The notes: generated by a model not told the origin, from the sequence alone. DNA of 63,465 nucleotides, filler included, from Octopus bimaculoides (GCF_001194135.2; 5 parts of 3 records of this genome joined end to end with filler, not necessarily neighbours in it), one strand, 5' to 3'; counted from the whole stretch's first letter, positions 9,828-28,397 are shown. Translations and numbers: made by a program.

Positions 9828-10383
9828 NNNNNNNNNNNNNNNNNNNNNNNNNNNNNNNNNNNNNNNNNNNNTTAATTAATTAANNNNNNNNNNNNNNNNN
9901 NNNNNNNNNNNNNNNNNNNNNNNNNNNATATATATATATATATATATATAACATCTACTGTGTCTTACTATATTAAGTACTGTGGAATAACATAAACGGT
10001 TGCATGTCGAATTGACAATAACGCAGTTACCTTCGCTCCCTGAATTCAAATCCTACAAGAATTCATTTTGTATTGGATACTGCTACGACCGTTTAAAAGA
10101 AAATACCAGTCGTATCTGGTGTAGATTCAGTCATCCCTATCACCCTCTACCACCCTCTATCTCCCTCCTATAAACCCTTGTACCCCAAAGTGTTTGTCTG
10201 TGTCTATATATGTCGATGTGTCTTTAAATTATTAACGAAAACATTACATTTTCATGCCTTTTCCTCTTTTCTTCTGCTCCTCCCCTCCTTCTCATCTCCC
10301 CCCTGCTCCTCTTCCTCGATCATCGTCGTCATCCTCGCCCCCCCCCCACCTACGCTACTCTGTAAAAAACACCATTTTGTTAG

Positions 10384-10507
10384 TTCCAACAACAACTGCC
10401 TTGGCGGAGGTTCGCAGTCGTCAAAAGGAACGGGTAAAGCGGTTGGAGGTAGTGAAGCGGACCTGCAGTGTCAAGCAGCGTACGGACCCACATCAGTTGT
10501 CCTCAGG
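10384..10507 (+). CDS. ADAMTS-like protein exon (end of protease domain, start of disintegrin-like domain)
   Basis: ttttgttag|...|gtaaga, phase 2 to 0: SNNNCLGGGSQSSKGTGKAVGGSEADLQCQAAYGPTSVVLR, resembling the ADAMTS CL...AD.QC...G..S motif. Confidence 0.8.
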
Positions 10508-10793
10508 GTAAGAATTATTTCTAATTCTTTATTTTTTTATTTGTCCGCTTGTTTATTTGTTTATTTGTTTGTTTTACCAATACCGTATTCTCCATATAAG
10601 ATCTTTTGAGTTACTCAGTAGTAAGGACATTTTCTTGTGAATATTTTATGTTCACTGTTAAGCTATATATTGGACTGGACAGCATTAAGTCTTCTAGAAT
10701 AACATGAAGCACACACACACACGTATATATGTATGTATGTATATATGTATGTGTGTGACTATATATGTATGTATGTATGTATACATATATGTA

Positions 10794-10837
<44 letters not shown>

Positions 10838-11439
10838 AATTAAGATATAAACTCAAATTAGACAATCATTCTCATAAAGTTATATATTCGACTTAAAATG
10901 CGTATACATATATATATATTAATATATTAATATATTAATAATANNNNNNNNNNNNNNNNNNNNNNNNNNNNNNNNNNNNNNNNNNNNNNNNNNNNNNNNN
11001 NNNNNNNNNNNNNNNNNNNNNNNNNNNNNNNNNNNNNNNNNNNNNNNNNNNNNNNNNNNNNNNNNNNNNNNNNNNNNNNNNNNNNNNNNNNNNNNNNNNN
11101 NNNNNNNNNNNNNNNNNNNNNNNNNNNNNNNNNNNNNNNNNNNNNNNNNCGCAGACGTTCTCTTTCGACATCGTTCACACGCGCCTGACTGGGGCTCAGA
11201 AGTCACAGCCCGAGTTGTTATCTATAATCGTGAAAATTAAAAGCAATCCAAATTCAATGTTTTCTTGAAACAATAAATTTCTACAGAGATTATGATTTAA
11301 ATTTCAATCTATGAAAAGTTTCTGTTCTGCAATATTCTTGAAGAAACAAAAAGTTATTCAGCAACTCGGGCTAATACGAACGAGCCTGGTAGGTGTAAAA
11401 GACTAACTGGCGTTTTTTGTCAAGAGTACAGGCGACTGT

Positions 11440-11711
11440 CAGAGCGCTGATGTCTGTCGAGCGTTCCGCTGTCGCTATTCGATTGCTGTTATTCTGTGCG
11501 TCTGTGTGTAAAGATCAGTTGTGTTTTGGAGGATTGCTTTATTTTAAGCCTTAAATTAGAAACAGAGAAAGACATAATGCTAGATATAAGAAATAAGCCA
11601 TTTGGGGAAAGAAATAAAGCGGATAAACGTGAAATTCTTCGAGCAGGCATGTGTCTTATGCGAAAACTGCGAAGAGCCCGAGTGACGCTGATGACCTGGA
11701 GTCGCCTCTGA
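11440..11711 (+). mobile_element. Possible hAT transposon 5' remnant
   Basis: MLDIRNKPFGERNKADKREILRAG loosely resembles the N-terminus of ZMYM1-like hAT transposases; weak. Confidence 0.25.
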
Positions 11712-12071
11712 TATATGTGTGTGTGTGTTAGTGTGCCGCTAAGTGTTTTGCCCGGCGTGCTTTGCTTTAGACTGAAGCGTTAGGAGACGAGCGAAATATT
11801 AATTAACGAATGTCAAAAGGATAGGAGTTATGTAATTATCTTCATTAGCCTCCAGTTGTTTCTTCTATGAGAAGAAGTACGCTCAGAGCAGAGCGTTTGT
11901 CCAACATCCTTTAGCTTCCTTTGAATCTTCAAATGAAGTGTATAGTTATTTCGTAAAGAATTTAAATTAATGTTTGCGAGCATACGTGCGTGTGTGCGTG
12001 CGTGCATGTGTGTGTATTCATCAAATTGTTGGGTCACCTTAAAAGTGTCTCCATTCGAATTCTGTTTTTAG

Positions 12072-12176
12072 CAAGAGTACAAAGATGACTACACCGTAAT
12101 ATGTTCTGGAATGAAATGTACAGAGTCTGATACACCCATAATTCCAAACGATGGTATGTCATGTGGCAGAAAAAGG
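12072..12176 (+). CDS. ADAMTS-like exon, disintegrin-like domain
   Basis: tgtttttag|...|gtaagc, phase 0 to 0: QEYKDDYTVICSGMKCTESDTPIIPNDGMSCGRKR (P.DG..CG motif). Confidence 0.9.
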
Positions 12177-12292
12177 GTAAGCGCTTATTTAACTCTGTCA
12201 TTCGCCTATTCTCTCTCTGTCTCTGCCTGTCTCTTTTTCTCTGTCTTTCGGTCTATCTCTCTATGTATGTCTATTTAAACACAAATGCAGAC

Positions 12293-12337
<45 letters not shown>

Positions 12338-12769
12338 GACATATATGCATTCAAAAGACTAGACTTTTTTTGTCTCTCTCTTCTATGTTTTCTCTTTTCA
12401 AAAAAAATATATTTCTCACAGCGTTCACTATTTTCCTCTCGTTCTGGTCTAACGACTCTCCATGTTTGTTTTCGTCCGGTTTCCTTGTATGTCTCCAACT
12501 ATCCTGTTTTTGTTTCGAATTTTGACTCTCTATAAATCCTAAATATTATTTTAGAATTTATGAGAGCAGCTGTCTTTGAAGACTTACATTGTCGTTGAAT
12601 GCTCGAAATGAGGAGTAGATAGACAGCCGACAACTGATGAAGGGTAGTTTTTCTGTGTTTCCTTGTCCTGTTTTCCATTTTTCCTCTCGTTGTTTACGTA
12701 TTTAACTGGTTTATCTACATATATATATATACATATATATATGAATATATAGTAATCCCTCACCATATT

Positions 12770-12840
12770 GTAGTTCACCTCCCGCGGTTCGCCTCCCGCG
12801 GTTCACCTCCCGCAGTTCACTTATCGCGGTTTACTGTTTA
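12770..12840 (+). repeat. 14-bp tandem (gttcacctcccgcg), probably a pogo/Tigger-like terminus
   Basis: Three to four units visible; family assignment is inference. Confidence 0.45.
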
Positions 12841-13318
12841 AGCCTACGTCGATTTTTCCGTGGTGTTGTTTTGCATTTATAAAATAAATATATACAAATT
12901 ATAAAAATAATTCTACTTTATTTGCCATGGCCGCAACAGATGTTGCAATAATCGTAGATTAATCAGAGACTGATATCCAGAGATTATCCACAATAACAAA
13001 TCCAAATGCTGAACATCTACATGGTCGTTGTAAGTGAAACAATAGACTAATCTCTCTCAAAATCAATCTCCACCATCATGAAATGTGGAGACATGCCTAC
13101 CTAGGATAATGTATCACTGGATATATCTTAAACAAAGATGGGATGAATATCTTTGACCCCGGGGTTCTGGTCAGTCAGAACCTTGTGTTAAGCAACAACA
13201 ACATCAACAACAACAATAATAATGATTTCATTTATTTGCCACTAGGGTGAAGGATGAGGAGGACAATAGAAAGACAGACATAGAGTGTGGGGGGTTTTCA
13301 CATAAAGAAATGATAAGA

Positions 13319-13350
<32 letters not shown>

Positions 13351-13384
13351 AAAACATTTAACCCATATCTTTCCCTGTTTACAG

Positions 13385-13436
13385 TGGTGTGAAGCTGGTC
13401 AGTGTGTACGATCGGACAGTGCTCCAAATGTAATGG
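13385..13436 (+). CDS. ADAMTS-like exon, end of disintegrin-like domain
   Basis: ccctgtttacag|...|gtaagt, phase 0 to 1: WCEAGQCVRSDSAPNVM. Confidence 0.9.
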
Positions 13437-13772
13437 GTAAGTTATCTTGTACATCTAGTTTTCACATCAGTTTTTCCCAGCTTCATTCTCTGATGCCCCA
13501 CGACACACCATCAGTGATGTTTCCAGGCGCCATTACGTGTTTGAGGTTTGAACTTGAACTCTTTGACTGTCTAAAGCATTTTCATAAGTTTCTCCGAAAT
13601 GTCCATGCTTCTTTCAGATTCTTAATTAACCCCTGTTTCATACGTTCCGAGTAACATAAACCTTTCCTTTCAGAAGTTATTCTGGCGGCTAAAGAAAAGC
13701 ACTGGGAGCGTGTGTCATATATGGTGCATGGACGCCAGGGAAATATGTTCTGTTTAAAACATGCAATGCACA

Positions 13773-13986
13773 GAACAGGCATAGGGTTCACAATGACTAG
13801 TTATTTATCCAGTCTTCGTTATTCTCCCTTCTTTTATTTATCCGCTACAAGTCATAACGTTGACTCCAGTGAAATTAGAAATCAGAAAGTTTGTCCGACG
13901 CTTTGACGATTCTGTTAATTCACCGTCACAACAAGAATAACGAAGACTGGATAAATAAAGAGTCATTGTGAACCCTATGCCTGTTC
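13773..13986. mobile_element. MITE-like inverted repeat in an intron
   Basis: Arms of about 53 bp (13773-13825 and 13934-13986) are near-perfect reverse complements. Confidence 0.7.
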
Positions 13987-14962
13987 ATCCAAACTAGGCA
14001 TAGGGTCTGTTCATCCAAACTATACTCCGTGAAGAAATGGATACAGATTTCGATATTAAAAATCCTTGCATCTTTGATCTCTTTAAATATGCCAACCATA
14101 TACGGGGTAGGTACACATTGCAATTTGCAACAAAAATTTATATAATGTCAAGGTGATCACCAACCGACTGGGATACATCGAAACCCAAACAGCCGAGAGG
14201 GCAAAATCGACGGCAACAGGACTGCTTCGTATATAGGATAATAGCTACAAATAACTATAGATTTCTGGCTAAAGTGATGATGATCTACGTTGGCAGCAAT
14301 TAGTCTATAGAATATTTTATGGAAGAGTTCACTGAGCGTGAAGTGAAGAATCTGTAAAATAATTTCATATAGGGGTCATAGCATCAGATATGGATTCAAA
14401 CTCAATAGTTTGTCGCATTCTAAAAGAGGCAAGAAGTATTTATGTTTGTTGCTTCGAGAAGAAGATACATGTTGCCTCGTTTATCACTGATTCATTCTCT
14501 CACTGATCCGGGATAACACGGTACGCACGTCGTGAAACATGTTATGGTTATCACGAATTCATCTGTTATAACACGGGTCGGCGTGTTATAACACGGTAGA
14601 AGCTTTTCTACTGTGGGCCTCGAGTTTAGTGACAATGAATCTACCATTCATTCCACTTGCAAAGTGCGTGGAGATAACTCACTTATCACAGATCCCCATA
14701 TCACTGCTTTTTAAAAAAAAATTTACCAAACCCCGTGATAAACGGGGATAGATATATAAAAGTGTTTTGAAGAAATTACTTCAACTTTGGCTTTACTGAT
14801 GGGTCTTGTACCTTACAACAAGATCGATCCCTCTTTTAAATATTGCCATCAAATTGTTGAAAGTTCTAAAAGTTAAATAAATTTTCTTTAATTGCAATAT
14901 AAAATCAGAAATCTAAATAATTTTGAAAATGTTTTTCTCTTGTGATTTATGAAAACGCGCAG

Positions 14963-15100
14963 GTCATTGTCCATTTGGAGACCAGCCTGGAATTGTTGAC
15001 CAAGATCTTCCTTGTGCTGAACTCATTGCTGTCTCGCCAGGTGAATGCTACACGGGTCGCTGCTGTGAATCTTGTGCATCCAAGTATGTCGGACTTGAAA
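14963..15100 (+). CDS. ADAMTS-like exon, six-Cys PLAC-like module 1
   Basis: cgcag|...|gtaagg, phase 1 to 1: GHCPFGDQPGIVDQDLPCAELIAVSPGECYTGRCCESCASKYVGLE. Confidence 0.9.
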
Positions 15101-15379
15101 GTAAGGGTTCTCTGTCTTACTAGTTATATCAATTGTCGTTATAATTTGATCTGCTTCTATGACCGTTTGTATTCAAAGTGACCCCTCATTGGGGAAGTAC
15201 CCTCGTCAGCTTTTGAAGTGGAGACATAGAAGCTGCGATGTTTATGCTGTTCAAATGTTATTAGCGACTCAAGTGAGGTGAAATGATATAACTGCAACTC
15301 TGAATCGAAACCGGTTCTCGAAGTCGTCTGATTGGGAACATACAGAGCTCCTGCAACACTCTCTTGAAAATCGAACATA

Positions 15380-15418
<39 letters not shown>

Positions 15419-16156
15419 CTCTTATGTAATTTACCGCACATAATTATCTCTATGTAATTTGGTTCGAAGCAGAATTCTACTGAAACAGTTCTGACCAATA
15501 TGAAACCTATACTCATATCTTCATCTTCTTTGTTTTACATCTGAGTGCGCGCGCGCGCGTAGGTATGCATAGATGTATGTATATATGTATGCATATATAT
15601 ATTTGTTATTCACATTATTTACATTATTTACATTTGACGGCTATAGAACTGTATATATATATATATATACATATGTACGTATGTATGTACGTATATATAT
15701 GTATATATTTATGTGAGTATATGTATACATGTTTGTGCGCGTGTGTGTGTTTAAGTTTGTATTTGTCTTTCACCGTTTGACAACAGTCATTGGTTTGTTT
15801 ATAAACTCATAACATGACGGTTCGGCAATAAGAACCGATGGAATAAGCGCCAGTCTTAAAAGAAAGCTCGGGGTCGAGTTGATTGACTAAACCTTTGGAG
15901 ACGGCCCCTTTCTAAGGCTGCAACACAATGATGGAAGGGAATTTTAAAAACAGAATAAAATTGCAATAAACGTTTGATCCCAAATCAAAAACTAATATAT
16001 TCTGAAGCCCACAAAATACATTTTAAATAGATCGGTTATTGTGTTTAATAGATATATATATTTGTCGACTTAATATAATTAAGAGATGTGGGTAATAAAT
16101 ATTGTAGATGGTTTATATTTTGATATTTTAATTCAACTGTTTCGTCTACTCTCAAG

Positions 16157-16288
16157 ATTGTGAATATGGCGATCGTGTTACCGGTTGCCGGAAGTTTCTT
16201 TGCGCTTTCTACAACGCTAATGCAAGAAATAAACTCTGCTGTCACACTTGTTCCAATGGAAAACTTCGAAAGATTACTTCCACCCCAG
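16157..16288 (+). CDS. ADAMTS-like exon, six-Cys PLAC-like module 2
   Basis: ctactctcaag|...|gtatgt, phase 1 to 1: NCEYGDRVTGCRKFLCAFYNANARNKLCCHTCSNGKLRKITSTP. Confidence 0.9.
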
Positions 16289-16982
16289 GTATGTAGACAT
16301 AATCTTAGTCAACTATTTTATTCAATCTACCTCTAATTCTCCCTGTTCGCTTTTTTTTTTCTTAGCGTCCCTTTCAATTTTCTTCCCTATATCTATAATC
16401 AGCCTCGGTACTTTTAGTTTACTCATTTCTAATGGACTTCTTTGTTAAATAACTCTAACATTGCATAGAAATACTATTTACATAGTACAGGCAGACCTGA
16501 AGCAGACGTGGAGTAGAGAGGGCATGTCATTGACGTGGCTGCAAATGGCGACGAAAGGACTTGGACAAACTTAAGTGACTGACTCCGTTCATGTCTTATT
16601 GGAAAAAACAGGGATGTCACCAAGACTGGTAGAAGTATTTACTATCAGCTGATGTATCTCATTATTGCAAAACCATTAATAGGATACAAACCCTACAACT
16701 TTTTCATCAAGCTGACATACCATTGGTTCATTACAGAAATATCAAATCTTTGTTGAAGTATATTACACCTCGTAGCCTACAACTAAAATAATGATGGAAC
16801 ACTCAACCGAATTACCACACCTCACTGTAGACCGTCACTGGATTTCTTGGACTCAGCATTCCTTACCCTTTTCTACATCGAGCTTATCGCGTTTCTTCTT
16901 CTTCTCCTCTCATTCTTCCACCCAAACATGTTCTCTCTCTCCTCTCGCATTCTCACCAATTCTCGTCCTCTCTTTCTTCTAG

Positions 16983-17141
16983 AACCTACAACTACTACCA
17001 CAATGGAACCAACCACAGAGTTGCTGACCACTGAACAACTGACCGAATTAGTAACCTCTGACCTCGACTGGATGTCAACTTTCATGACCTTACCACCGCT
17101 CAACCTCACTAAATTACTATCCACCTTGAAATCAACAAAAG
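16983..17141 (+). CDS. ADAMTS-like exon, Thr-rich stalk
   Basis: Long polypyrimidine tract, ttcttctag|...|gtaact, phase 1 to 1: EPTTTTTMEPTTELLTTEQLTELVTSDLDWMSTFMTLPPLNLTKLLSTLKSTK. Confidence 0.75.
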
Positions 17142-17395
17142 GTAACTACATTCAGGTAGCGCTTCTACACGATACATACGCGTTGCAGTATGTATTACTA
17201 TGAAATACATGCGCATTACATTAGGTATCACTATGTAATATATAAGTATTACGTTAGTTACTAATATGTACTACTTACTATTACATTAGGTATTACTGAG
17301 TTATACATAACATAGCTGAGCGTTGCAATCCAATCGTCACCGCATACATACTTTATACAAGGATGGAAGTCAAACACAATATGACTATATATGTG

Positions 17396-18264
17396 TGTGT
17401 GTGTATAACAATAAGTATTCGGACTGTTGCCATAGTAACAAAGTTAAAGCACGCAGAGTAAAGTCGCTTAGCACAGATTGACTTTGAACTCTGCTGCGCA
17501 TGTGCACTAAATTTTAACGTTCTAGCTCACTTCCGCTGATTACAGCAGTACTTTTAAGTAATGTGTGAAACGTGTGATTGTTGCATTGTCATGACAAAGA
17601 AAATTGTCATGGCGATACCTGCTCAGAGGCCTACGCAAAGCTGCAGAAAGTGTATAGAGAGGAGTATATGAGCCTCACACAAGTGTATGAGTGGTTCAAA
17701 CGCTTCCAAGATGACCGAAAAAATGGCGATATTGACGAATATTCTGGGAGACCCGCAACCAGCAGAAATGAGAAAAACATCGCAGATGTGCGTGCAACTG
17801 AGAGGGGAAATCATCGAATCACCGTCTGTGCAGATTAGTTACGGTTCAGTTCAGTCCATTATCACTGAAATTTGGGTATGAGACGCGTGTCTACCAAGTT
17901 TGTGCCAAAACTGCTTTCACCTAACCAAAAAAACTCTTGGGTTTCCGTTGCACAAGATCTCCTTGATTGAATCGAGAACGATGAAAACTTTGCGTAGGCC
18001 TCTGTGCAGGTATCGCCAAGCTTTTGACAAAATTTGATGCAGATTCTCTACTCAACTCTCTGTGTCATGGTCAATGCGACAATTACAGGCTACACACCTT
18101 CCTTCCAAGCACTGCTGTAAACAGTAGAAGTGAGCTAGAACGTTAAAACTTAGTGCACATGCACAGCAGAGTTCAAGGTCAATATGTGCCAAGCAGCTTC
18201 ACTCTGCGTACTTTAGCTTCGTTACTATGGCAACAGTCCGGATACTTATTGATCAGACGACATA
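17396..18264 (+). mobile_element. Internally deleted mariner with about 140-bp TIRs
   Basis: TIRs at about 17396-17538 and 18122-18264; internal LQKVY...TQVYEWFKRFQD...SGRPATS and KFVPKLL transposase remnants; no catalytic domain. Confidence 0.88.
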
Positions 18265-18770
18265 TGTATACGGTTTTTCTTTGAGTTATATCTAAGTTCT
18301 TCTTAAGAATGTCATCTACAATAGCCTCGAGGCCATCAAAACCTTGTGAGCAGATTTGGTTGGCGGAAATCGAAATAATCCTGTGGTATAAAGATACACA
18401 GCTTACGACATCTTTTGATATATATACAACTTTACATAGACCTACACATGTTTCAACTGCACCGATTAGTAACTGTTGTAATTGCAACCCTACTATAACA
18501 CCGGTGCAGTCTCTTCAGGGTCTTTACTCGATATCCTTCGATTTAACCGTTTAAAGTTTCTTTTATCTACTGGATGATGTTGTGTTGTCCGTTAAGTTAG
18601 ACGCGAACAATCTCCATTTCAAGTTTTTATTGGATAATCATTTATAGTCCATTATTTCAAAACCTTCTATTGTTTAAATAATTATTCATTTATACTTGGC
18701 AAATATGAACTGCTTGATGCGCAAGCATCTCAATATATATGAATGTATGTATGTATGTTTATTTGTATAG

Positions 18771-18947
18771 CACCAACAGCAATGCCTACAACCAAAGTGT
18801 TGATTCCAACATTCAGAAGAAGCGACCTTATTCCGTGCTGGAACCCACATTTGAGGGGTTGGGTTTATCGCAAGAAATGTAACATGTTTGGTAAACGAAG
18901 GAAATACAGAAAGTCACCCCTGAGCCCAGTGTCCCGGAAGTACAGAG
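18771..18947 (+). CDS. ADAMTS-like exon, basic tail
   Basis: tttatttgtatag|...|gtaatc, phase 1 to 1: APTAMPTTKVLIPTFRRSDLIPCWNPHLRGWVYRKKCNMFGKRRKYRKSPLSPVSRKYR. Confidence 0.65.
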
Positions 18948-20192
18948 GTAATCTTTACGTTTATATTTGCACATCGTTCGTCCGGTTAATTATAGCTTTG
19001 TCATTCAATAATCTTTCGATGATAGGCAACAAAACGATCAGGTTTCCATGCTCCATAGAAAAGACTGATAATTCAGCCTTCCAGCCATCTTCCTATAAAT
19101 ACATCCATTTATGAGGTCATCTGTAAATTTGTTTATTTAGCTATAAGTAACACGAGTTGATAGGTTTTATGCCACCTCTGTGTGGAGCGAAGACATGTTC
19201 AATTATGAAAAGGTTTATATAAAAAGATGACTTACATGTTTTTTCTTAAGAGTTTCCGGCAGATTTGAACGTGAATATGTTAATCGCTGGTGTGTTTGTC
19301 ACAGGAAGTCATCTTCTCCTTTATGACAAATAAGTGTTCATAACATACTCGATTCATTATTGTAAGGGATTCTGTGACAGTCTGTGATTCAACATCGAGA
19401 GTGTTACGAACATGCATTCATCGTAAAGAAGTTGTTTTCCTGTAACGAAACACAGCAGCAATTAGCATATTCGTGCTCGAATCTGGAGGAACACATAAAA
19501 AATGTTCTTACAAATCATCGTTTTAATTCTCACTGTTCACCTTGCTTTATGGCGATTCATATAAACTGATAACAAAATATATCAATATAAAAAAAAGAAA
19601 AGGAAATATGCGCATGCGCTTTACACACGTATATGTATTATGTTTTTGTTTGTGCATTTTAAAGTCATACTGTAAAATAATATTGGGATTATAATGGGGT
19701 TAATATTTTCAGCAGGTGTATGTGAGCGGCATTACAGGCTTCAGGGCAATGCATTAAGTTCTTATAGAATTTATTTACTGATAGCATGCTACAAGATACA
19801 TAGATTAGAATTGGACCCCTAGACCCATGAGGCACCCAAGCGACTGCCCGGAGTGTTTATGGCTCAAGGTGACACTTGAGTATTATTCCATTGTAATAAT
19901 ACTAAATACGTTTCACGTATAGAGTAACCTCAAATATGTGATCTTCGTTGTACGAGGACACCGTCAGCTTGCTGTGCCGGGTTCATGATCAAAATCTCGC
20001 TAATCTTTTTAAACGTTCCTCCTTCCAAACAGGCGCAATTCTTTCCACCAAATAACGAAATGGAAAAAATCTTCAGCAACATTTCGATAGAGATTCGATC
20101 AAGCACTGGTGAACAAAAAAAATAAACAGGACAAAAAGCACAAAATAATTAAGTACAGTAGTTAGCATTAAGCAATTTGGGTTCACATACAA

Positions 20193-20625
20193 GGCGCAGG
20201 AGTGGCTGTGTGATAAGAAGCTTGCTTACCAACCACATGGTTCCGGGTTCAGTCCCACTGCGTGGCACCTTGGGCAAGTGTCTTCTACTATAGCCTCGGG
20301 CCGACCAAAGCCTTGTGAGTGGATTTGGTAGACGGAAACTGAAAGAAGCCCGTCGTATATATATNNNNNNNNNNNNNNNNNNNNNNNNNNNNNNNNNNNN
20401 NNNNNNNNNNNNNNNNNNNNNNNNNNNNNNNNNNNNNNNNNNNNNNNNNNNNNNNNNNNNNNNNNNNNNNNNNNNNNNNNNNNNNNNTAACTTAGCGGTT
20501 TGGCAAAATAGACCGATAGAATAAGTACTAGGCTTACAAAGAATAAGTCCTGGGGTCGATTTCTTCGACTAAAGGCGATGCTCCAGCATGGCCGCAGTCA
20601 AATGACTGAAACAAGTAAAAAAAAA
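20193..20625 (+). mobile_element. SINE family A, full length, with a gap in its internal microsatellite
   Basis: tRNA-like head (tggctgtgtgataag; ggttcagtccc), CORE-like gcaccttgggcaagtg, family tail. Confidence 0.85.
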
Positions 20626-20647
20626 TTATGTATCACGAATTCTCTTT

Positions 20648-20873
20648 GGAGGCGGCGAGCTGGCAGAATCATTAGCGCGTCGGACAAAATGGTTAGTAAC
20701 ATTTCTTTCGGCTCTTTACGTTCTGACTTCAAATTTCAACGAGGCCAACTCTGTCCCTCATCCTCTCGGTGTCAATAAAATAAAGTACCAGTCAAGTACT
20801 GAGGTCGAAGTAACCGACTTGTCCCCCACCCACACAAATTTGAGGCCTTGTGCCTCCAGTAGAAAGGATTATT
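20648..20873 (+). mobile_element. SINE family B
   Basis: ggcggcgagctggcagaatc head and catcc...gtcaataaaataaagtaccagt body; related copies at 23140-23280, 32075-32800, 39215-39900 and 52340-52520. Confidence 0.7.
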
Positions 20874-21704
20874 TCCTGCATAATATTTCTCTACTGATTT
20901 TCCATAGAAAGTTACGACGTTTCGTATACGAATACGTTTATATAAACAACGCGATGGAAGATTAAAAAAAAGTAGATAATGGGTGTATATACGTATTTCA
21001 GAAGTTGTTGCTCTTTTATCAGTATCACATCCAACCCATCCATGAACGCATGGCTTAAATACCCACAAAGTTTAGCGCTGTAATATATTCCTTCATAGTG
21101 TCCAGATGTAGAGTTTCAAGTTCTTTTTCTGTTGTCTTATGTCGGTGGAGATGTCACATACCCAATAAATTGCTGGATATGTGAGATGTTATCCCATTAT
21201 TATGTCTTCCAATGCCAGTAATACACGTGGCCTCTGTTCCTTACTGGAATACTGTGGCCGGTGGGAGTTTACTTCTTTATTCGCTCCTAAAATACAGAAA
21301 TTGGTAAGGAATTCAATGATTATGAAATCCTCTGGCATGTAGATTAGAAAAAGAGTTCATTTAAGCTGTCCACAATCCCAATATATAGTGTAAGTACAGA
21401 CTGACATCTGGTCAGTCTTATTCATATGACTTTAACTCGAGGTGATTATTGATCGCTGTCGGCCAACGTTGATCTTTGTTGATAATTAGTGATCTCTATT
21501 GATCGTTGTTAATCGCTGTTAGTTACTGTTGGTCTGTATTGATTAATGCTAATCACTGTATTGATCAATGCTAACCACTGTATTGATCAGTATCGATCTC
21601 TATTGACAGCTCTTGGTTTATGTTTTGTTTGATCTTAGTGTAAGGAACTTATATTGCGCTGCAACCAGATGGCGCAACAATACACTGGTGATGCAAAACG
21701 CGCC

Positions 21705-22100
21705 ATCTCGCATTGAGTCATCATCACTCAACACCCCACTAACACTGAGTCATCATCACTCACTCAGATTCACCAATATACCACCGAACCATCATTACTC
21801 ACCATCAACCACTTAGTCAGAGTCACCTACACTCACATCAATCACAGCACAACTGTGTCACTCGCACTCACTGAGTTAGAGCCAGATTCACCAATACACT
21901 ACTGAGTCATCTTCACTCACCAGCACATCGCTGATTCATCGTCATTTACCATCAGTCCATTGTGCCACCTACACTCACCGTCACATCAATACTCACAAGC
22001 ACATCGCTGAGTTAGTCACCTATACTCAACATCACCGACTGAGCCAAAGCCACCTACACCCAGCAATCCCTGAATCATCTGCACTCATCATGACACCAAT
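21705..22100 (+). repeat. Degenerate A/C-rich minisatellite (actgagtcacctacactcacc-like unit)
   Basis: Recurrent ctgagtca, cacctacactcac and agcacatcgctga words. Confidence 0.65.
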
Positions 22101-24123
22101 GAGGCATGGATGCTCACCACCCACACCATAGAATCCCATATACACACATCCACACCACCATATCTCCTACGCTCAGTAAAAATATTTTCTGAGTTTAGAT
22201 TAAGATATTTATTTCTGTTGAGTGTAGGGTTCTGTAAGAAGTTCACAGCTCATTTCCCCTCAACAGTTGAATACGTCTGGGGTTTAAAATCACAAAGACT
22301 GATTCATGACGAGTAACCCAAGCTGTATTAGTTTAAGATAGCTATAAGGGTATCATACTTAATGCAAACACATCACGGAAAGTCAAATTAACTGCGGTAT
22401 TCAACTGCAAATAATATCTCTTATGGAAGTACGGTGTTAATACAAAAATATATCAGTAGCAGATGAAAATCATCCAGTAGTGGTGATGACAATGCTAAAT
22501 GCTCATTTCTGTCACTTTGGGCTTTGTCAGTAGAAAGAATCCACTGGCACTCGCATACTGAGGCAAAATCTGCTGTTTATATATTTTTGTGTTTTTAACA
22601 CTTATCAGAGATATCTCAGAACGAATGCTGCATTAAATCAAGCTTTCAACGGTATGTCTGCCTTGAATAGGTAGACAGATTGCTATTTTAAACAAAGGCA
22701 TTTTATTTATCATTTATAGTGTAATAGTAAATCCGGTTCTGTGAATTGATTCAGTGAGCCCAGTTCGATCCCTCTTTGGAATGGCTCAGTTTCCTGTTTG
22801 ATGAAAATAATGCTTTCTTATACTGATACACAGATCTGTCTTCAACGTTTTGGTCTGATGTGATGGCATTCATGCCTATCCGATGTCTGGTTTGATGTGG
22901 TGACATTTTGTAATATTAATGCTTTTCTTAGAGATGAGGTGACGTCACTGAAGTTCTAAATGTTTAAGACTCTTACTGGATATGAGCATCGTTCTCATCA
23001 CGGGTTCCAATGCAGTCCGGGATATTTAGATTGGGGAAAGACACTTATTGATAATCGAAGATCGAACAGATCGAAATGTAGTGTAGATGTAAGTACTGTG
23101 TTGTAAAATAAGTACAAGGTCCATAGATACTGAGGGAGAGGGGCACATCTGATTATATGGATCCTAGTACATGACTGCTAATTATTTTATCGACCTCCGG
23201 TTGGCTGGACGGCAAAGTCGGCCTCAGCATGAGTTGAATGCGATTTGAACGCAGAATATAAACTGACACAACTAAACGATGCAGTCATATATATGTATAT
23301 ATATATATATNNNNNNNNNNNNNNNNNNNNNNNNNNNNNNNNNNNNNNNNNNNNNNNNNNNNNNNNNNNNNNNNNNNNNNNNNNNNNNNNNNNNNNNNNN
23401 NNNNNNNNNNNNNNNNNNNNNNNNNNNNNNNNNNNNNNNNNNNNNNNNNNNNNNNNNNNNNNNNNNNNNNNNNNNNNNNNNNNNNNNNNNNNNNNNNNNN
23501 NNNNNNNNNNNNNNNNNNNNNNNNNNNNNNNNNNNNNNNNNNNNNNNNNNNNNNNNNNNNNNNNNNNNNNNNNNNNNNNNNNNNNNNNNNNNNNNNNNNN
23601 NNNNNNNNNNNNNNNNNNNNNNNNNNNNNNNNNNNNNNNNNNNNNNNNNNNNNNNNNNNNNNNNNNNNNNNNNNNNNNNNNNNNNNNNNNNNNNNNNNNN
23701 NNNNNNNNNNNNNNNNNNNNNNNNNNNNNNNNNNNNNNNNNNNNNNNNNNNNNNNNNNNNNNNNNNNNNNNNNNNNNNNNNNNNNNNNNNNNNNNNNNNN
23801 NNNNNNNNNNNNNNNNNNNNNNNNNNNNNNNNNNNNNNNNNNNNNNNNNNNNNNNNNNNNNNNNNNNNNNNNNNNNNNNNNNNNNNNNNNNNNNNNNNNN
23901 NNNNNNNNNNNNNNNNNNNNNNNNNNNNNNNNNNNNNNNNNNNNNNNNNNNNNNNNNNNNNNNNNNNNNNNNNNNNNNNNNNNNNNNNNNNNNNNNNNNN
24001 NNNNNNNNNNNNNNNNNNNNNNNNNNNNNNNNNNNNNNNNNNNNNNNNNNNNNNNNNNNNNNNNNNNNNNNNNNNNNNNNNNNNNNNNNNNNNNNNNNNN
24101 NNNNNNNNNNNNNNNNNNNNNNN

Positions 24124-24158
<35 letters not shown>

Positions 24159-24906
24159 TTTCTTTTAAAATGAAATTGATAGTCAAAGATTATGTAGCAT
24201 TCATGCATTTCTGAAAGACAATAGGTGATGTAAGGTGAGAGTGACTTGACCTGGGAGACGAAAGCGGATCGTATATTCGCCTCATTGGTGGTTCCACGAC
24301 GCCGAAACACTGGTGAACATAAATGGCATTTGTTGTTGATGTTGAAACACTCGTTCATTTTGTAGGTAACCAAGCAGCAGGCTGCAGGATGCGTTGCAAG
24401 CAGTCTTGCAGGCAACCCTTGCCCATTGCAGGTTTGTCTCCCTTTGCTAGCCCTTGCGCACCGCTGCTACTGTCGCTATTGTCGCTACTGTCGCTACTAC
24501 TGCTACCCACACTACAACTGCTACCACCACCATTACCACTTCTGTCATCATCATTACAACACTTCAACTACTGTCTCTACAACAAAGTTCCCCTATTCCT
24601 CCTTTTCTACCACCACCACCACCGCCATCTCTATTCTCTTCTCTAAAATATTCTTTCTTTCTTTTTCTTCTTTGTTTTTTTTTTGTCCAGTTTCGTGTGA
24701 ACGATCAAAGTTTCCTCTCAAAATACCTGTCACTCCAACCAAATACTTATGTCTCCCAAACTTAGCCCAGACCCTAAAATACACATTTTGCTGGCCCTTC
24801 TTACCACCACCACCTCCTCTTCTCTCTTCTCACTCATCATCAACATTTCACACCCCTGTCAACCGTTTCAAGTCCTTTTTCTCTTCATCTCTCTTTCACA
24901 TTTCCA

Positions 24907-24973
<67 letters not shown>

Positions 24974-24974
<1 letters not shown>

Positions 24975-25345
24975 TCTTCGGAGATGAAGGAAATTTCTGT
25001 TCAGAAATCGTATCAGGAAAAGCATCGTGGGGTGCACACTGTCCAACTGCCCTATCAACAGCTTCAAAATGTGCTCGAAGACCTACGTAGTACATGTAGT
25101 AGTCCGCAAGAAATGTGGTACAATCCTAAAATGGGATCGCCACCAGAAAACTGCACATTTGCGTCAAAGACACATGCACACAAACGCTTCGGTCCATAAA
25201 CATCTGCAGAATTGCCAAACCTTGAACTTTGTTGTATCCATCAGAGCCACCGAATGTAACACAGGTGACTTTGGAATCAAGGAGGCCATCCTAATTATAA
25301 ATTGAAACCAGCATTAAACTACAGACAAGAACTACCCAAAGGAAA
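24974..25345 (+). mobile_element. Penelope-like element PLE-3, GIY-YIG remnant of a different family
   Basis: CTLSNCP...CSKTYVV...ATRKLH..VK...ASVHKHLQNC...IKEAILI..LKPALNYRQEL with frameshifts. Confidence 0.75.
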
Positions 25346-25416
25346 CTGACTATTATAACAACACTAATCTGTGTGTTTCACTACCTTCTGTATAACTGAG
25401 CATCTCTCATTTTTTT

Positions 25417-25464
25417 ATGTCCTGATGAAGAGGTGTTAATCCCGAAATATTGAATTACAACATA
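25417..25464 (+). ncRNA. Hammerhead family 3, degenerate, downstream of PLE-3
   Basis: AUGUC-CUGAUGA-A-GAGGUGUUAAUCCC-GAAA-UAUUG...; both core boxes intact, helix II has one mismatch, helix I/III register ambiguous. Confidence 0.5.
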
Positions 25465-26077
25465 AAACTTCAACTGCAGTTTTGTCCTCATTTTTGCATT
25501 TTATTTTACATTGTTTCGGCCTTAACAAGTTTTTATTTAATCCATACAAATACACATACGTACATAAACTCTCACACACACACACGCGCGTGCATACATG
25601 CATGTATGAATTCTAAAGTTAAACTGTTATAATCTCACTTCTGTAATTTCATAATTCTCTGCTTCTCCCCATCACTCTGTATTCATATACTTTTCATCTG
25701 TCCCATAAATAATCTTGTCTCATGCACCATATACTAAAACTCACTGCACCACCACCACCACCACCACTACCATTACTACCGCTGTCACCACCATGAGCCT
25801 CACAAAGCAACTGACCACTTCGCGCACGCACAACTGGTTTACTTTAAATGCAAGCGTGTACGCATGCGCGTGCTTTTATATGCATTGAGTGTGTGTGTCA
25901 GGTTGGGTTGACGTCTTTATGTGCACGTGTGTGAATCTGTGTGTGCATGTATTTGTGTGATTGCGCATGTGATTGGGAGAATGTGTTTGTAAATGCGTGC
26001 CTGAGTAAATGCTAATATATTCATGTTGGTAAATAAGATTGCATAAAGACATAAATATGCTTCTTTTGTGTGTGTGT

Positions 26078-26126
<49 letters not shown>

Positions 26127-26374
26127 TGTGTGTGTGTGTGNNNNNNNNNNNNNNNNNNNNNNNNNNNNNNNNNNNNNNNNNNNNNNNNNNNNNNNNNNNN
26201 NNNNNNNNNNNNNNNNNNNNNCTGTTTCTATGTTTTCTGCATAATGTTCTTTATGGTATCTGCATTTCTTTTGTATACATAAGTGTGGAAAACCCAGGTC
26301 CAAACTTTTTTACAAAAAACATCGATTGTTTCAACCTCATTATCGAAACAAAAACAAGTATAATAATAATAATG

Positions 26375-26432
<58 letters not shown>

Positions 26433-26439
26433 TGATGAT

Positions 26440-26665
26440 GATAATAATTTACTCAAGTTCGTTCTTATTGTTGGTAGAATTTATGTGGGTAGCGGGTAAC
26501 TACCAGTAACCTTAGGTACCCACAAGTTTTCATCAGTCTTTCAAGTGCTAAGAACTCTCCTGATAATCTTTCCTGTCCCTAAGAGGCAAACTTTCTGTAG
26601 AAGCTCTATAGGGCATTCTATTCCAATCTCCTTCAACCATTTCTCTATATCTTTACAATTTTCAT
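26440..26665 (-). mobile_element. RLE-type (R4/Dong-like) non-LTR 3' fragment
   Basis: KDIEKWLKEIGIECPIELLQKVCLLGTGKIIRRVLST*; runs into the (AAT)n tract at 26358-26447. Confidence 0.75.
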
Positions 26666-26699
26666 TATTAATATTATTACTATAATATACACTCAACAG

Positions 26700-27418
26700 A
26701 TTAGATTATTGGAAAAGAAAATCCTAACATCGGGCTACAACAAGTTGCCTTAGATGCTACGAACCTTCCTATTGGGTTACAGCAAGTAACCTTAGATGCC
26801 AAGAGCCCTCCTAAGTATCTTAGCCTGTCCCTAATAACACTGTTTTCTGGAGCTGTAATAATTTGGGTTTTATGCCTATTTCCTTTATCCATCTGTTCAG
26901 ATCTTTAGGGATAGTTCCCAATGCACCTATAACTACTGGGATACATTTTACCCGCACGTTCCTTAGTCTCTGTAATTCAATGGCTGGGTCCTGGTACTTT
27001 ACTATTTTTTCTGTACCGCTCATATAGATTTTGTTTCATAATTTGGCACTGTAAAGTCAATTATCTGGCACTTTCTATTCTTTTTATCTACTACTACTAA
27101 ACCAGGCCTTCTAGCTTCTATTACTCTGTCAGTATCTTATACTTCTTACTTTCTTATACTTTACTAGATTCCTGTTCAAACTATTTACCAGTATGGTCAA
27201 ATCCTAGCTTTCTACATAACTCCCATAGTGGATTACTCTTCCTAGATTGTCATATCTTTTCTTGTATTCTTTCTGTGCCAGCATGTTACATTCACTTACT
27301 ATATGGGTAACACTTTCCTCTTTTGATTTACATAATCTACGTTGGGAATCTACTTGGTTTTTATCTATCTTGGCTTTTATTCAATTAGTCCTTAATGGTT
27401 GACCTTGCGCAGATTATT
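26700..27418 (-). mobile_element. RLE-type (R4/Dong-like) non-LTR 3' fragment
   Basis: RLCKSKEESVTHIVSEC knuckle, RRPGLVVVDKKNRKCQIIDF, KYQD.AIELQRL...IPVVIGALG; 5' end abuts (ATT)n. Confidence 0.85.
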
Positions 27419-28169
27419 ATTATTATTATTGTTGTTGTTGTTGTTGTTGTTGATATTATATTTGTACATCAATCGAATGAGATAAATCGTTTAATGGAAA
27501 AGTAAAGTTTCAAATCATTCCAAAAAATGTTTCTGCGCTCGTTCATTTTGGCGATGAAGTTTATCAGGAGGATGTTCAAAACGTTTTCCTTGCCCCACCC
27601 CACACAATTCTTTGTGAGTGCGCTTGCAATCCCTGCACCCCCTATTCCAGAGCCTGTGCCAGTTCACTTTGTATAAATACTGTATACCGTCGTCATAATC
27701 TACGCTGCTTATTTGCAGTCTATATTGTATACGTATAACATTTGTGATATATGTAAACCGAGTGTATATTGCGTATGTTCTACGTACTGTAGGTATATCA
27801 TCATTATACTCTATATATACTGTTTCTATATTGTTTTCACACTGTATAAGTATTATTCATATACTGATTGTGTATTGTCTATATACTCTCTCCCCGCTCT
27901 CTGTATAAAACCTGTATCGTTAAAGGATGGTTTATAAATTTAAAATTATTTTAAAATATGAATATTGACTGAAAAAAAAAGTAGGACTCCACGCAAGTAA
28001 CATACAATTAATAATTTTAAATAAGATATAAATAATAAGTATAATTAATAAATATAATAAATAACATATAATTGATAATTTCATTGATAGCGACTTCAAA
28101 GTTTCGGCGGTAGATGGCGTTGTCAGTGTGCATCAACTTGTCTGCTCCATGCATAGACGGTAGAAGTAT

Positions 28170-28274
28170 AAAATAGACAGATAGATTGATAGATAGACAA
28201 ATAGACAGATAGATAGAGAGACAGATAGATTGATAGACAGACAGACCAACAGACAGGTAGACAGACAGACAGAC

Positions 28275-28319
<45 letters not shown>

Positions 28320-28397
28320 CATTTCTTTTATTAGCCACACAGGGCTCAACGAAGATGGGACAAATACAATGTAGAGCTTTTCTTTTTGGGAGGGGGA
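28170..28397 (-). mobile_element. 3' end of a young retroelement with an (ATCT)n tail
   Basis: About 80 bp identical to about 56152-56232, with AATAAA before the tail. Confidence 0.65.

Follow-up and report, generated by a model that had tools for sequence, protein, structure and literature searches.

Seven coding exons of a TSP1-less ADAMTS-type gene in Octopus bimaculoides, with relatives across the molluscs and a probably non-catalytic product

The window analysed was 63,465 nucleotides (nt) of Octopus bimaculoides DNA, filler included (GCF_001194135.2; 5 parts of 3 records of the genome joined end to end, not necessarily neighbours in it), and positions are counted from its first letter on the strand given, 5' to 3'. 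The locus described here, 10384-18947, holds seven exons of an ADAMTS-type gene and lies in the piece 9928-28397, which was the DNA examined and which is AT-rich (G+C approx. 36%) and laden with microsatellites and transposon debris. An earlier reading made from the sequence alone had proposed seven exons with GT-AG sites, intron phases 2-0-0-1-1-1-1-1 and one open frame, and this model proved exact. Each exon follows an AG and leads into GTAAG, GTATG or GTAAT, all 14 splice sites are canonical, and the spliced frame runs for 295 codons without stop or frameshift, with 19 cysteines (Cys) within residues 1-183. The exons (table 1) are internal, coding and consecutive, and they encode the non-catalytic half of the product of a cephalopod ADAMTS-type gene. 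As a separate observation on the splice pattern, non-use of the exon 5 donor (16288/16289) would lead to a stop two codons on (...STPGM*) and to a hypothetical isoform ending just past the second six-Cys module.

Table 1. Features located in the piece, with the amino-acid (aa) or nt identity to the cuttlefish protein P0001 and other support. A slash within a peptide marks an intron position.
Feature	Position	Strand	Phase	Content	Support or detail
Exon 1	10384..10507	+	2 in, 0 out	M12B end (NNNCL) and first third of disintegrin-like (ADAMTS_CR_2) domain	71% aa identity to Sepia P0001; phase-2 and phase-0 introns matched in Gigantopelta
Exon 2	12072..12176	+	0/0	Disintegrin-like domain, middle	69% aa identity to P0001; homologous phase-0 intron CGNKK/ICRKG in Gigantopelta
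Exon 3	13385..13436	+	0/1	Disintegrin-like domain end (WCEAGQCV...)	Approx. 16 bits added to ADAMTS_CR_2; 82% aa identity to P0001; Gigantopelta gene structure
Exon 4	14963..15100	+	1/1	Six-Cys module type A (CPFGDQPGI...C...CY...CC.SC)	98% aa, 80% nt identity to P0001; motif kept in eight relatives
Exon 5	16157..16288	+	1/1	Six-Cys module type B (CEYGD..C..C....CC.TC)	100% aa, 82% nt identity to P0001
Exon 6	16983..17141	+	1/1	Thr/Pro-rich stalk	91% aa identity to P0001; pN 0.07 vs pS 0.73
Exon 7	18771..18947	+	1/1	Stalk end, two-Cys loop (CWNPHLRGWVYRKKC), start of polybasic tail	86% aa identity to P0001
Assembly gap, 206 N	10944..11149			Inside intron 1	
Internally deleted mariner-type element	17409..18251			In intron 6, outside the gene product	180-nt terminal inverted repeats 17409-17588/18072-18251, 86% complementary, and an inner 31-nt inverted repeat

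Relatives were sought among 1.84 billion representatives with a profile of the exon 4 and exon 5 translations (two-row alignment), and eight proteins were found, the best being P0001 (867 aa, 165 bits); word-index searches gave no match with the spliced product and only four short mollusc fragments with the family alignment. P0001 was recorded only in assembled sequencing runs (103 blocks of the collection), and it is mRNA-derived because the contigs of approx. 4.1 kb carry an uninterrupted open reading frame (ORF) of 2604 nt. Its traceable runs belong to larval and juvenile RNA-seq studies of the cuttlefish Sepia esculenta; for two of the other relatives the runs were SRR6473829 (P0004) and SRR6063410 (P0007). 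The 295 residues of the octopus product aligned with P0001 residues 424-718 free of gaps, so that the six junctions are correct to the residue. Nucleotide identity was 70-82% by exon, and over the shared region divergence was saturated at synonymous sites (pS 0.77) and low at non-synonymous sites (pN 0.09), from which it follows that all seven exons, including those for Thr-rich stalk and basic tail, are coding and under purifying selection, and that the two sequences split long ago, which fits an octopod and a cuttlefish. Selection was strongest on the two six-Cys modules. The octopus product was 84% identical to P0001 in the shared region versus 35-43% to the other relatives, and P0001 is taken on this basis to be probably the orthologue and not an old paralogue. 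Both the octopus product and P0001 have lost from the disintegrin-like domain a Cys pair kept by the other molluscs in the alignment. A decaying pseudogene, or frames open by chance, would suit a gene that is incomplete in the piece and for which a transcript of the source species was not found, but it is very improbable given 295 intact codons, the 14 canonical splice sites, the pN/pS values and the 98-100% aa identity of exons 4-5 despite a nt divergence of approx. 20%.

Product residues 24-84, encoded by exons 1-3, matched the Pfam ADAMTS_CR_2 domain with a score of 39.8 bits (cut-off 27.3), and the match ran unbroken from profile position 6 to position 69 of 69. The score was additive by exon (exons 1 + 2, 23.8 bits; 2 + 3, 24.3 bits; 1 + 3, only 13.6 bits). 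The product carries an ADAMTS-type disintegrin-like domain, and the match supports the earlier assignment of the locus to an ADAMTS-type gene. The domain order that had been read from the sequence, namely disintegrin-like domain, two six-Cys modules, Thr-rich stalk and basic tail, was likewise borne out. Two features of canonical ADAMTS proteins are lacking in the product: the central TSP1 repeat after the disintegrin-like domain, and the Cys-rich domain with the spacer, for which Pfam gave no match in the spliced product, P0001 or P0003-P0008.

The TSP1 repeat was looked for at several levels. Motifs of the WxxW/CSxTCG type were absent from the six frames of the piece, Pfam TSP_1 was absent from the plus-strand ORF pieces of 9928-19200 (the range of the ORF scan, in which a mariner helix-turn-helix (HTH) domain was the sole Pfam find), and TSP_1 was also absent from P0001 and the mollusc relatives. 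The intron 13437-14962, where the sequence-only reading had allowed that a TSP1 exon might be hidden, was negative by six-frame motif scan, by Pfam and by the Sepia mRNA. A canonical ADAMTS gene whose TSP1, Cys-rich and spacer exons had been missed in an intron, in a gap or downstream might be entertained on account of the four N gaps in the piece and the missing 3' end of the gene. Against it, the Sepia cDNA is collinear and leads straight from the disintegrin-like domain into the modules, the 149 aa that remain in it beyond exon 7 form a Cys-free basic tail, and the Gigantopelta gene, with equal exon order, has no TSP1 either; an oversight of this kind is extremely improbable.

The gap in intron 1 starts 436 nt past the exon 1 donor and ends 922 nt short of the exon 2 acceptor, and splicing carries the frame across it. 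The ADAMTS_CR_2 profile is collinear from exon 1 into exon 2, the protein derived from Sepia cDNA shows ...GPTSVVMR/KHYVNDY... at this junction with no insertion, and an extra exon is absent from the Gigantopelta intron homologous to intron 1 (equal position, phase 0). Because all three are collinear at this point, no coding exon is missing in the gap.

Each six-Cys module is encoded by a single exon of 44-46 codons, and both types recur in all relatives by motif scan and alignment. Type A (exon 4) follows the pattern C-P-x-G-D-Q-P-G-I...C...C-Y...C-C-x-S-C, with the spacing C-x14-C-x10-C-x4-CC-x2-C, and type B (exon 5) the pattern C-E/P-Y/F-G-D...C...C...C-C-x-T-C, with the spacing C-x8-C-x4-C-x11-CC-x2-C. 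PLAC has been defined in words as a region of approx. 40 residues with six cysteines in extracellular proteins (PMC8221789), and both modules agree with that definition. The Pfam PLAC model (PF08686) had no match at E<=10 for the isolated modules, and 11 relatives and arrays of modules (those of four modules included), searched at E<=0.1 to 10, gave none either, it being noted that HMMER filters discard most matches above E of approx. 0.1. The reading of the modules as PLAC therefore stood as regards the verbal definition but not as regards the Pfam model, and the term PLAC-like would here denote resemblance and not demonstrated membership. The module profile gave no match to PDB sequences; for the module pair, AlphaFold gave a model with a predicted local distance difference test (pLDDT) value of 69.8 (medium confidence), which had no match in the PDB by Foldseek. 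Tandem, exon-sized six-Cys modules under extreme constraint and outside Pfam may interest matrix biologists. P0007, P0015 and P0018, relatives recorded as transcript contigs, have another module behind A and B, of the classical C-x-D type (CVDSADINGQSCQRYIGEQGRHSCYNTRLSAYCCQSC), and this third one too had no match to Pfam PLAC.

P0001 has a signal peptide, its sole hydrophobic segment is N-terminal, and there is no transmembrane segment. Its tail (residues 681-867, 187 aa) has a pI of 12 and contains 51 K+R, and the exon 7 peptide alone has a pI of 11.5; twelve runs of at least two K/R follow residue 600. In P0004 and P0005, too, the modules are followed by a Thr-rich stalk. Beyond the end of exon 7 (...SRKYR) P0001 continues for 149 aa, Cys-free and basic, and the junction codon G/TG fits the phase-1 donor at 18947/18948. 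The last exon or exons lie in one of the downstream gaps (20365-20487, 23311-24123 and 26141-26221) or beyond the piece. A further observation in the conserved polybasic tail, common to exon 7 and P0001, is a two-Cys loop with F-G-KRRK behind it, a motif similar to a prohormone signal for amidation and cleavage. The basic C-terminus could accordingly be pictured as a precursor from which cleavage at its many dibasic sites would release small peptides, basic or amidated (e.g. ...CNMF-G-KRRK), with the ADAMTS-like part as the carrier, and the twelve K/R runs, the position of F-G-KRRK right after the loop and the 86% conservation in exon 7 agree with this. Its basis is pattern only, however, Pfam finds nothing in the P0001 tail, and a polybasic tail is just as typical of a protein that binds polyanions; such a precursor is improbable.

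The layout of M12B, ADAMTS_CR_2 and six-Cys modules was also found in gastropods (Gigantopelta aegis, Patella) and in a bivalve (Sinanodonta), and module-bearing records that are partial or protease-less were found in Elysia and Mercenaria. By Pfam, Reprolysin (M12B) and ADAMTS_CR_2 were both present in P0001, P0003, P0004, P0005 and P0008, with no TSP_1 and no PLAC in any of them. The order M12B, ADAMTS_CR_2, module A and module B (or several B) is shared by Gigantopelta XP_041374975.1/XP_041374976.1, Patella KAK6166468.1 / XP_050418820.1 and Sinanodonta woodiana KAL3854149.1, the introns having been compared in Gigantopelta. In the gene for XP_041374975.1 the introns fall at LYYLK/RKGNNCL (phase 2), SYFCR/DFYSNAA (phase 0), CGNKK/ICRKGAC (phase 0) and VPAVL/DFCPQGD (phase 1), and past the fourth intron there are seven six-Cys modules on one phase-1/1 exon each; the positions and phases (2,0,0,1,1,1...) are those of the octopus gene. 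With type A and then type B modules after the disintegrin-like domain, and with equal intron positions and phases, the octopus gene has the traits that define the mollusc family. The number of modules, 2 to 7 among the relatives, varies by exon duplication, because each module occupies one symmetric phase-1/1 exon. The relatives differ from the octopus product in sequence (the identities given above) and in module number, their zinc motif is intact, and their C-termini differ as well: P0004 has a transmembrane segment and a cytoplasmic tail, and P0005 a hydrophobic end.

When a family profile of protease and disintegrin-like domain was compared with the sequences of solved structures, the matches with ADAMTS-5, -1, -13 and -4 (E 5.7e-28 to 8e-21) took in both domains, whereas those with snake-venom metalloproteinases and ADAMs were confined to the protease domain; in these two domains the family is for that reason ADAMTS-type. 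The family is mollusc-wide, and judged from its members TSP1 was never present after the disintegrin-like domain. Public databases label the mollusc proteins 'ADAMTS 7-like', 'Peptidase M12B domain-containing' or 'uncharacterized', and literature searches found no published description of a mollusc family with this layout. An ADAMTS without TSP1 is here a conserved mollusc family, neither an isolated case nor a mistake of annotation, and the verified exons supply a model for the 3' half of the octopus gene.

At the position of HExxHxxGxxH(D), P0001 residues 376-396 read RLLGHSLSAGYA (RLLGHSLSAGY): of the zinc histidines the first and the third are replaced, as are the glycine and the catalytic glutamate. 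The Met-turn stretch is deleted, so that the canonical combination of zinc motif and Met-turn is wanting in the Sepia orthologue, and there is no furin site (R-x-K/R-R) ahead of the M12B domain, where P0004 has RSKR and P0005 RNKR. The motif HELGHSLGxxHD(G) is intact in the gastropod and bivalve relatives P0003, P0004, P0005 and P0008, those from Gigantopelta, Patella and Sinanodonta included. An AlphaFold model of the Sepia protease and disintegrin-like domains was poor (pLDDT 45.7) and was not used. A non-catalytic binder is proposed for the cephalopod protein on account of what is gone from the Sepia orthologue, namely two of three zinc histidines together with the catalytic Glu, and also the furin site and the Met-turn stretch; a matrix- or surface-binding role without catalysis is the likelier one for the cephalopod lineage because the Sepia site is disabled and the octopus product shares the lost Cys pair, the stalk and the tail.

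Alternatively, the seven exons could belong to a secreted and active M12B protease of salivary/venom or matrix-remodelling function, whose ancillary half they would encode, with the zinc site intact in the octopus gene and the cuttlefish copy alone dead. The intact motif of P0003, P0004, P0005 and P0008 and the furin sites in two of them speak for this, as do the activity of MIG-17 and Sona as enzymes and the abundance of metalloproteases in the posterior salivary gland proteome of Octopus vulgaris (PMC7693380). It is weakened by the fact that the closest relative by far is catalytically dead and shares the lost Cys pair, stalk and tail with the octopus product, and by the origin of the Sepia transcripts, which come from larval and juvenile RNA-seq and not from gland-specific data; an active protease is accordingly unlikely. 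Several proposals of the sequence-only reading are affected. Its statement that the HEXXH exons are not in the piece was confirmed. As for its 'secreted M12B protease' architecture, the TSP1-less ADAMTS-type layout was upheld but the word protease became doubtful with the losses in Sepia. A salivary or venom role found no support, the cuttlefish transcripts being those of larval and juvenile RNA-seq studies, and the architecture was not 'lineage-specific', since it is shared by gastropods and a bivalve and has precedents in MIG-17 and Sona.

Taken together, 10384-18947 very probably represents seven internal coding exons of a cephalopod gene that belongs to a mollusc-wide, TSP1-less, ADAMTS-type (M12B) family of extracellular proteins, with a non-catalytic role being probable. 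As read from the Sepia orthologue, the complete protein would start with a signal peptide, a pro-like region and the M12B domain on upstream exons, continue with the disintegrin-like domain (exons 1-3), module A (exon 4), module B (exon 5) and a Thr/Pro-rich, presumably O-glycosylated stalk (exons 6-7), and end in a short loop closed by a disulfide and then a long polybasic tail, encoded by exon 7 and at least one more exon that the piece does not contain. It would be secreted, and by analogy with the ancillary domains of ADAMTS proteins the modules, stalk and basic tail may anchor it on extracellular matrix or cell surface through partners or polyanions; the cephalopod protein would then probably act as a non-catalytic binder or scaffold and not as an enzyme. 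Some points tell against this picture. The catalytic exons of the octopus gene lie outside the piece, so that the loss of the active site seen in Sepia may or may not extend to Octopus, and the gastropod and bivalve relatives retain HELGHSLGxxHDG. No transcript of the source species was found, an exact look-up of the exon 7 ORF gave no match, all support for the junctions comes from homology, and the probable orthology of P0001 is based on identity figures. In 18948-28397 the last coding exon or exons were not found by permissive searches (tblastn of P0001 719-867; blastn of the Sepia 3' untranslated region), which returned noise only.

A bolder form of the same interpretation is possible, although somewhat doubtful: coleoids would carry an ancient secreted ADAMTS-type pseudoprotease in which the folds were kept and zinc binding and furin activation were lost, in which function resides in the modules, stalk and polybasic tail, and whose modules are a domain type (CxxGD...CC..C) outside Pfam, without a solved structure and at most distantly akin to PLAC. 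If true, the protein would be a ligand or scaffold in the matrix and the first 'dead ADAMTS', where the canonical ADAMTS proteins are all regarded as active. The disabled site of the cuttlefish orthologue by itself makes an unusual non-catalytic ADAMTS-type protein of possible interest in matrix biology. No venom role is supported, and no long-standing question is opened.

The remaining elements of the piece are mobile or repetitive. The mariner-type element of intron 6 retains an ORF remnant of 86 aa (17578-17835) with a Mos1 HTH_48 domain (31 bits, Pfam). Intron 6 also has a 33-nt tandem repeat at 17172-17309 (4.2 copies, 71% matches), and intron 3 a 53-nt inverted repeat at 13773-13986 (96% complementary, arms 108 nt apart) with the look of a small miniature inverted-repeat transposable element. 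Two copies of a tRNA-derived-looking sequence resembling a short interspersed element (SINE; ...GGTTCAGTCCCACTGCGTGGCACCTTGGGCAAGTGTCTTCTACTATAGCCTCGGGCCGACCAAAGCCTTGTGAGTGGATTTGG...) were seen at 20190-20364 and 18290-18390, which we take to be like an abundant Octopus SINE; ARAGORN called no tRNA in the piece. On the minus strand at approx. 26700-27400 there were ORF fragments of the kind usual towards the C-terminus of ORF2 in a non-long-terminal-repeat retrotransposon (...IPVVIGALGTIPKDL...; ...VTHIVSECNMLAQKEY...), with a weak zf-RVT match of 17.5 bits, below cut-off. Long plus-strand frames at 21600-22130 and 24366-25200 are low-complexity artefacts (His/Thr/Ser-rich TCA-CTC repeats; (TAC)n at 24907-24974) and do not belong to the gene.

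Mature ADAMTS proteins all share a centrally placed thrombospondin type 1 repeat (TSR), a Cys-rich domain and a spacer, and all are regarded as active enzymes (PMC4885070). With canonical ADAMTS-1, -4, -5 and -13 the mollusc family has the ADAMTS-type protease and disintegrin-like domains in common, whereas the central TSP1, the Cys-rich domain and the spacer are absent from it. ADAMTSL proteins have no protease or disintegrin-like domain and are built from TSRs (PMC4885070); ADAMTSL1-5, papilin and the inactive ADAMs resemble the Sepia orthologue by functional analogy, as non-catalytic metzincin relatives that work in matrix or adhesion through ancillary domains, but the orthologue, compared with ADAMTSL, retains a disabled protease fold and has no TSRs. 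The nearest known layouts are those of C. elegans MIG-17, with signal, pro, protease, disintegrin and PLAC regions and no TSR (PMC4856095), and of Drosophila Sona (CG9850), with pro, protease, disintegrin-like and Cys-rich regions, which is described as closest to MIG-17 and Bombyx BmADAMTS-like (PMC4989167). These three share with the mollusc proteins a secreted M12B protein in which the disintegrin-like domain is directly followed by a small Cys-rich/PLAC domain, with no TSR, and by comparison of published domain maps the architecture of this TSR-less subgroup (pro, M12B, disintegrin-like, PLAC/Cys-rich) is also that of the Sepia orthologue and the mollusc relatives. The octopus gene differs from MIG-17 and Sona in having a pair of six-Cys modules (Gigantopelta and Patella have seven), missed by Pfam PLAC, and then a Thr-rich stalk and a polybasic tail, and, unlike those active enzymes, its nearest relative is catalytically dead. 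The TSR-less ADAMTS layout was thus known already, and what is new are the tandem exon-sized modules outside Pfam PLAC, the mucin-like stalk, the polybasic tail and the disabled cuttlefish active site; the finding sets a mollusc family beside the MIG-17/Sona type of TSR-less ADAMTS.

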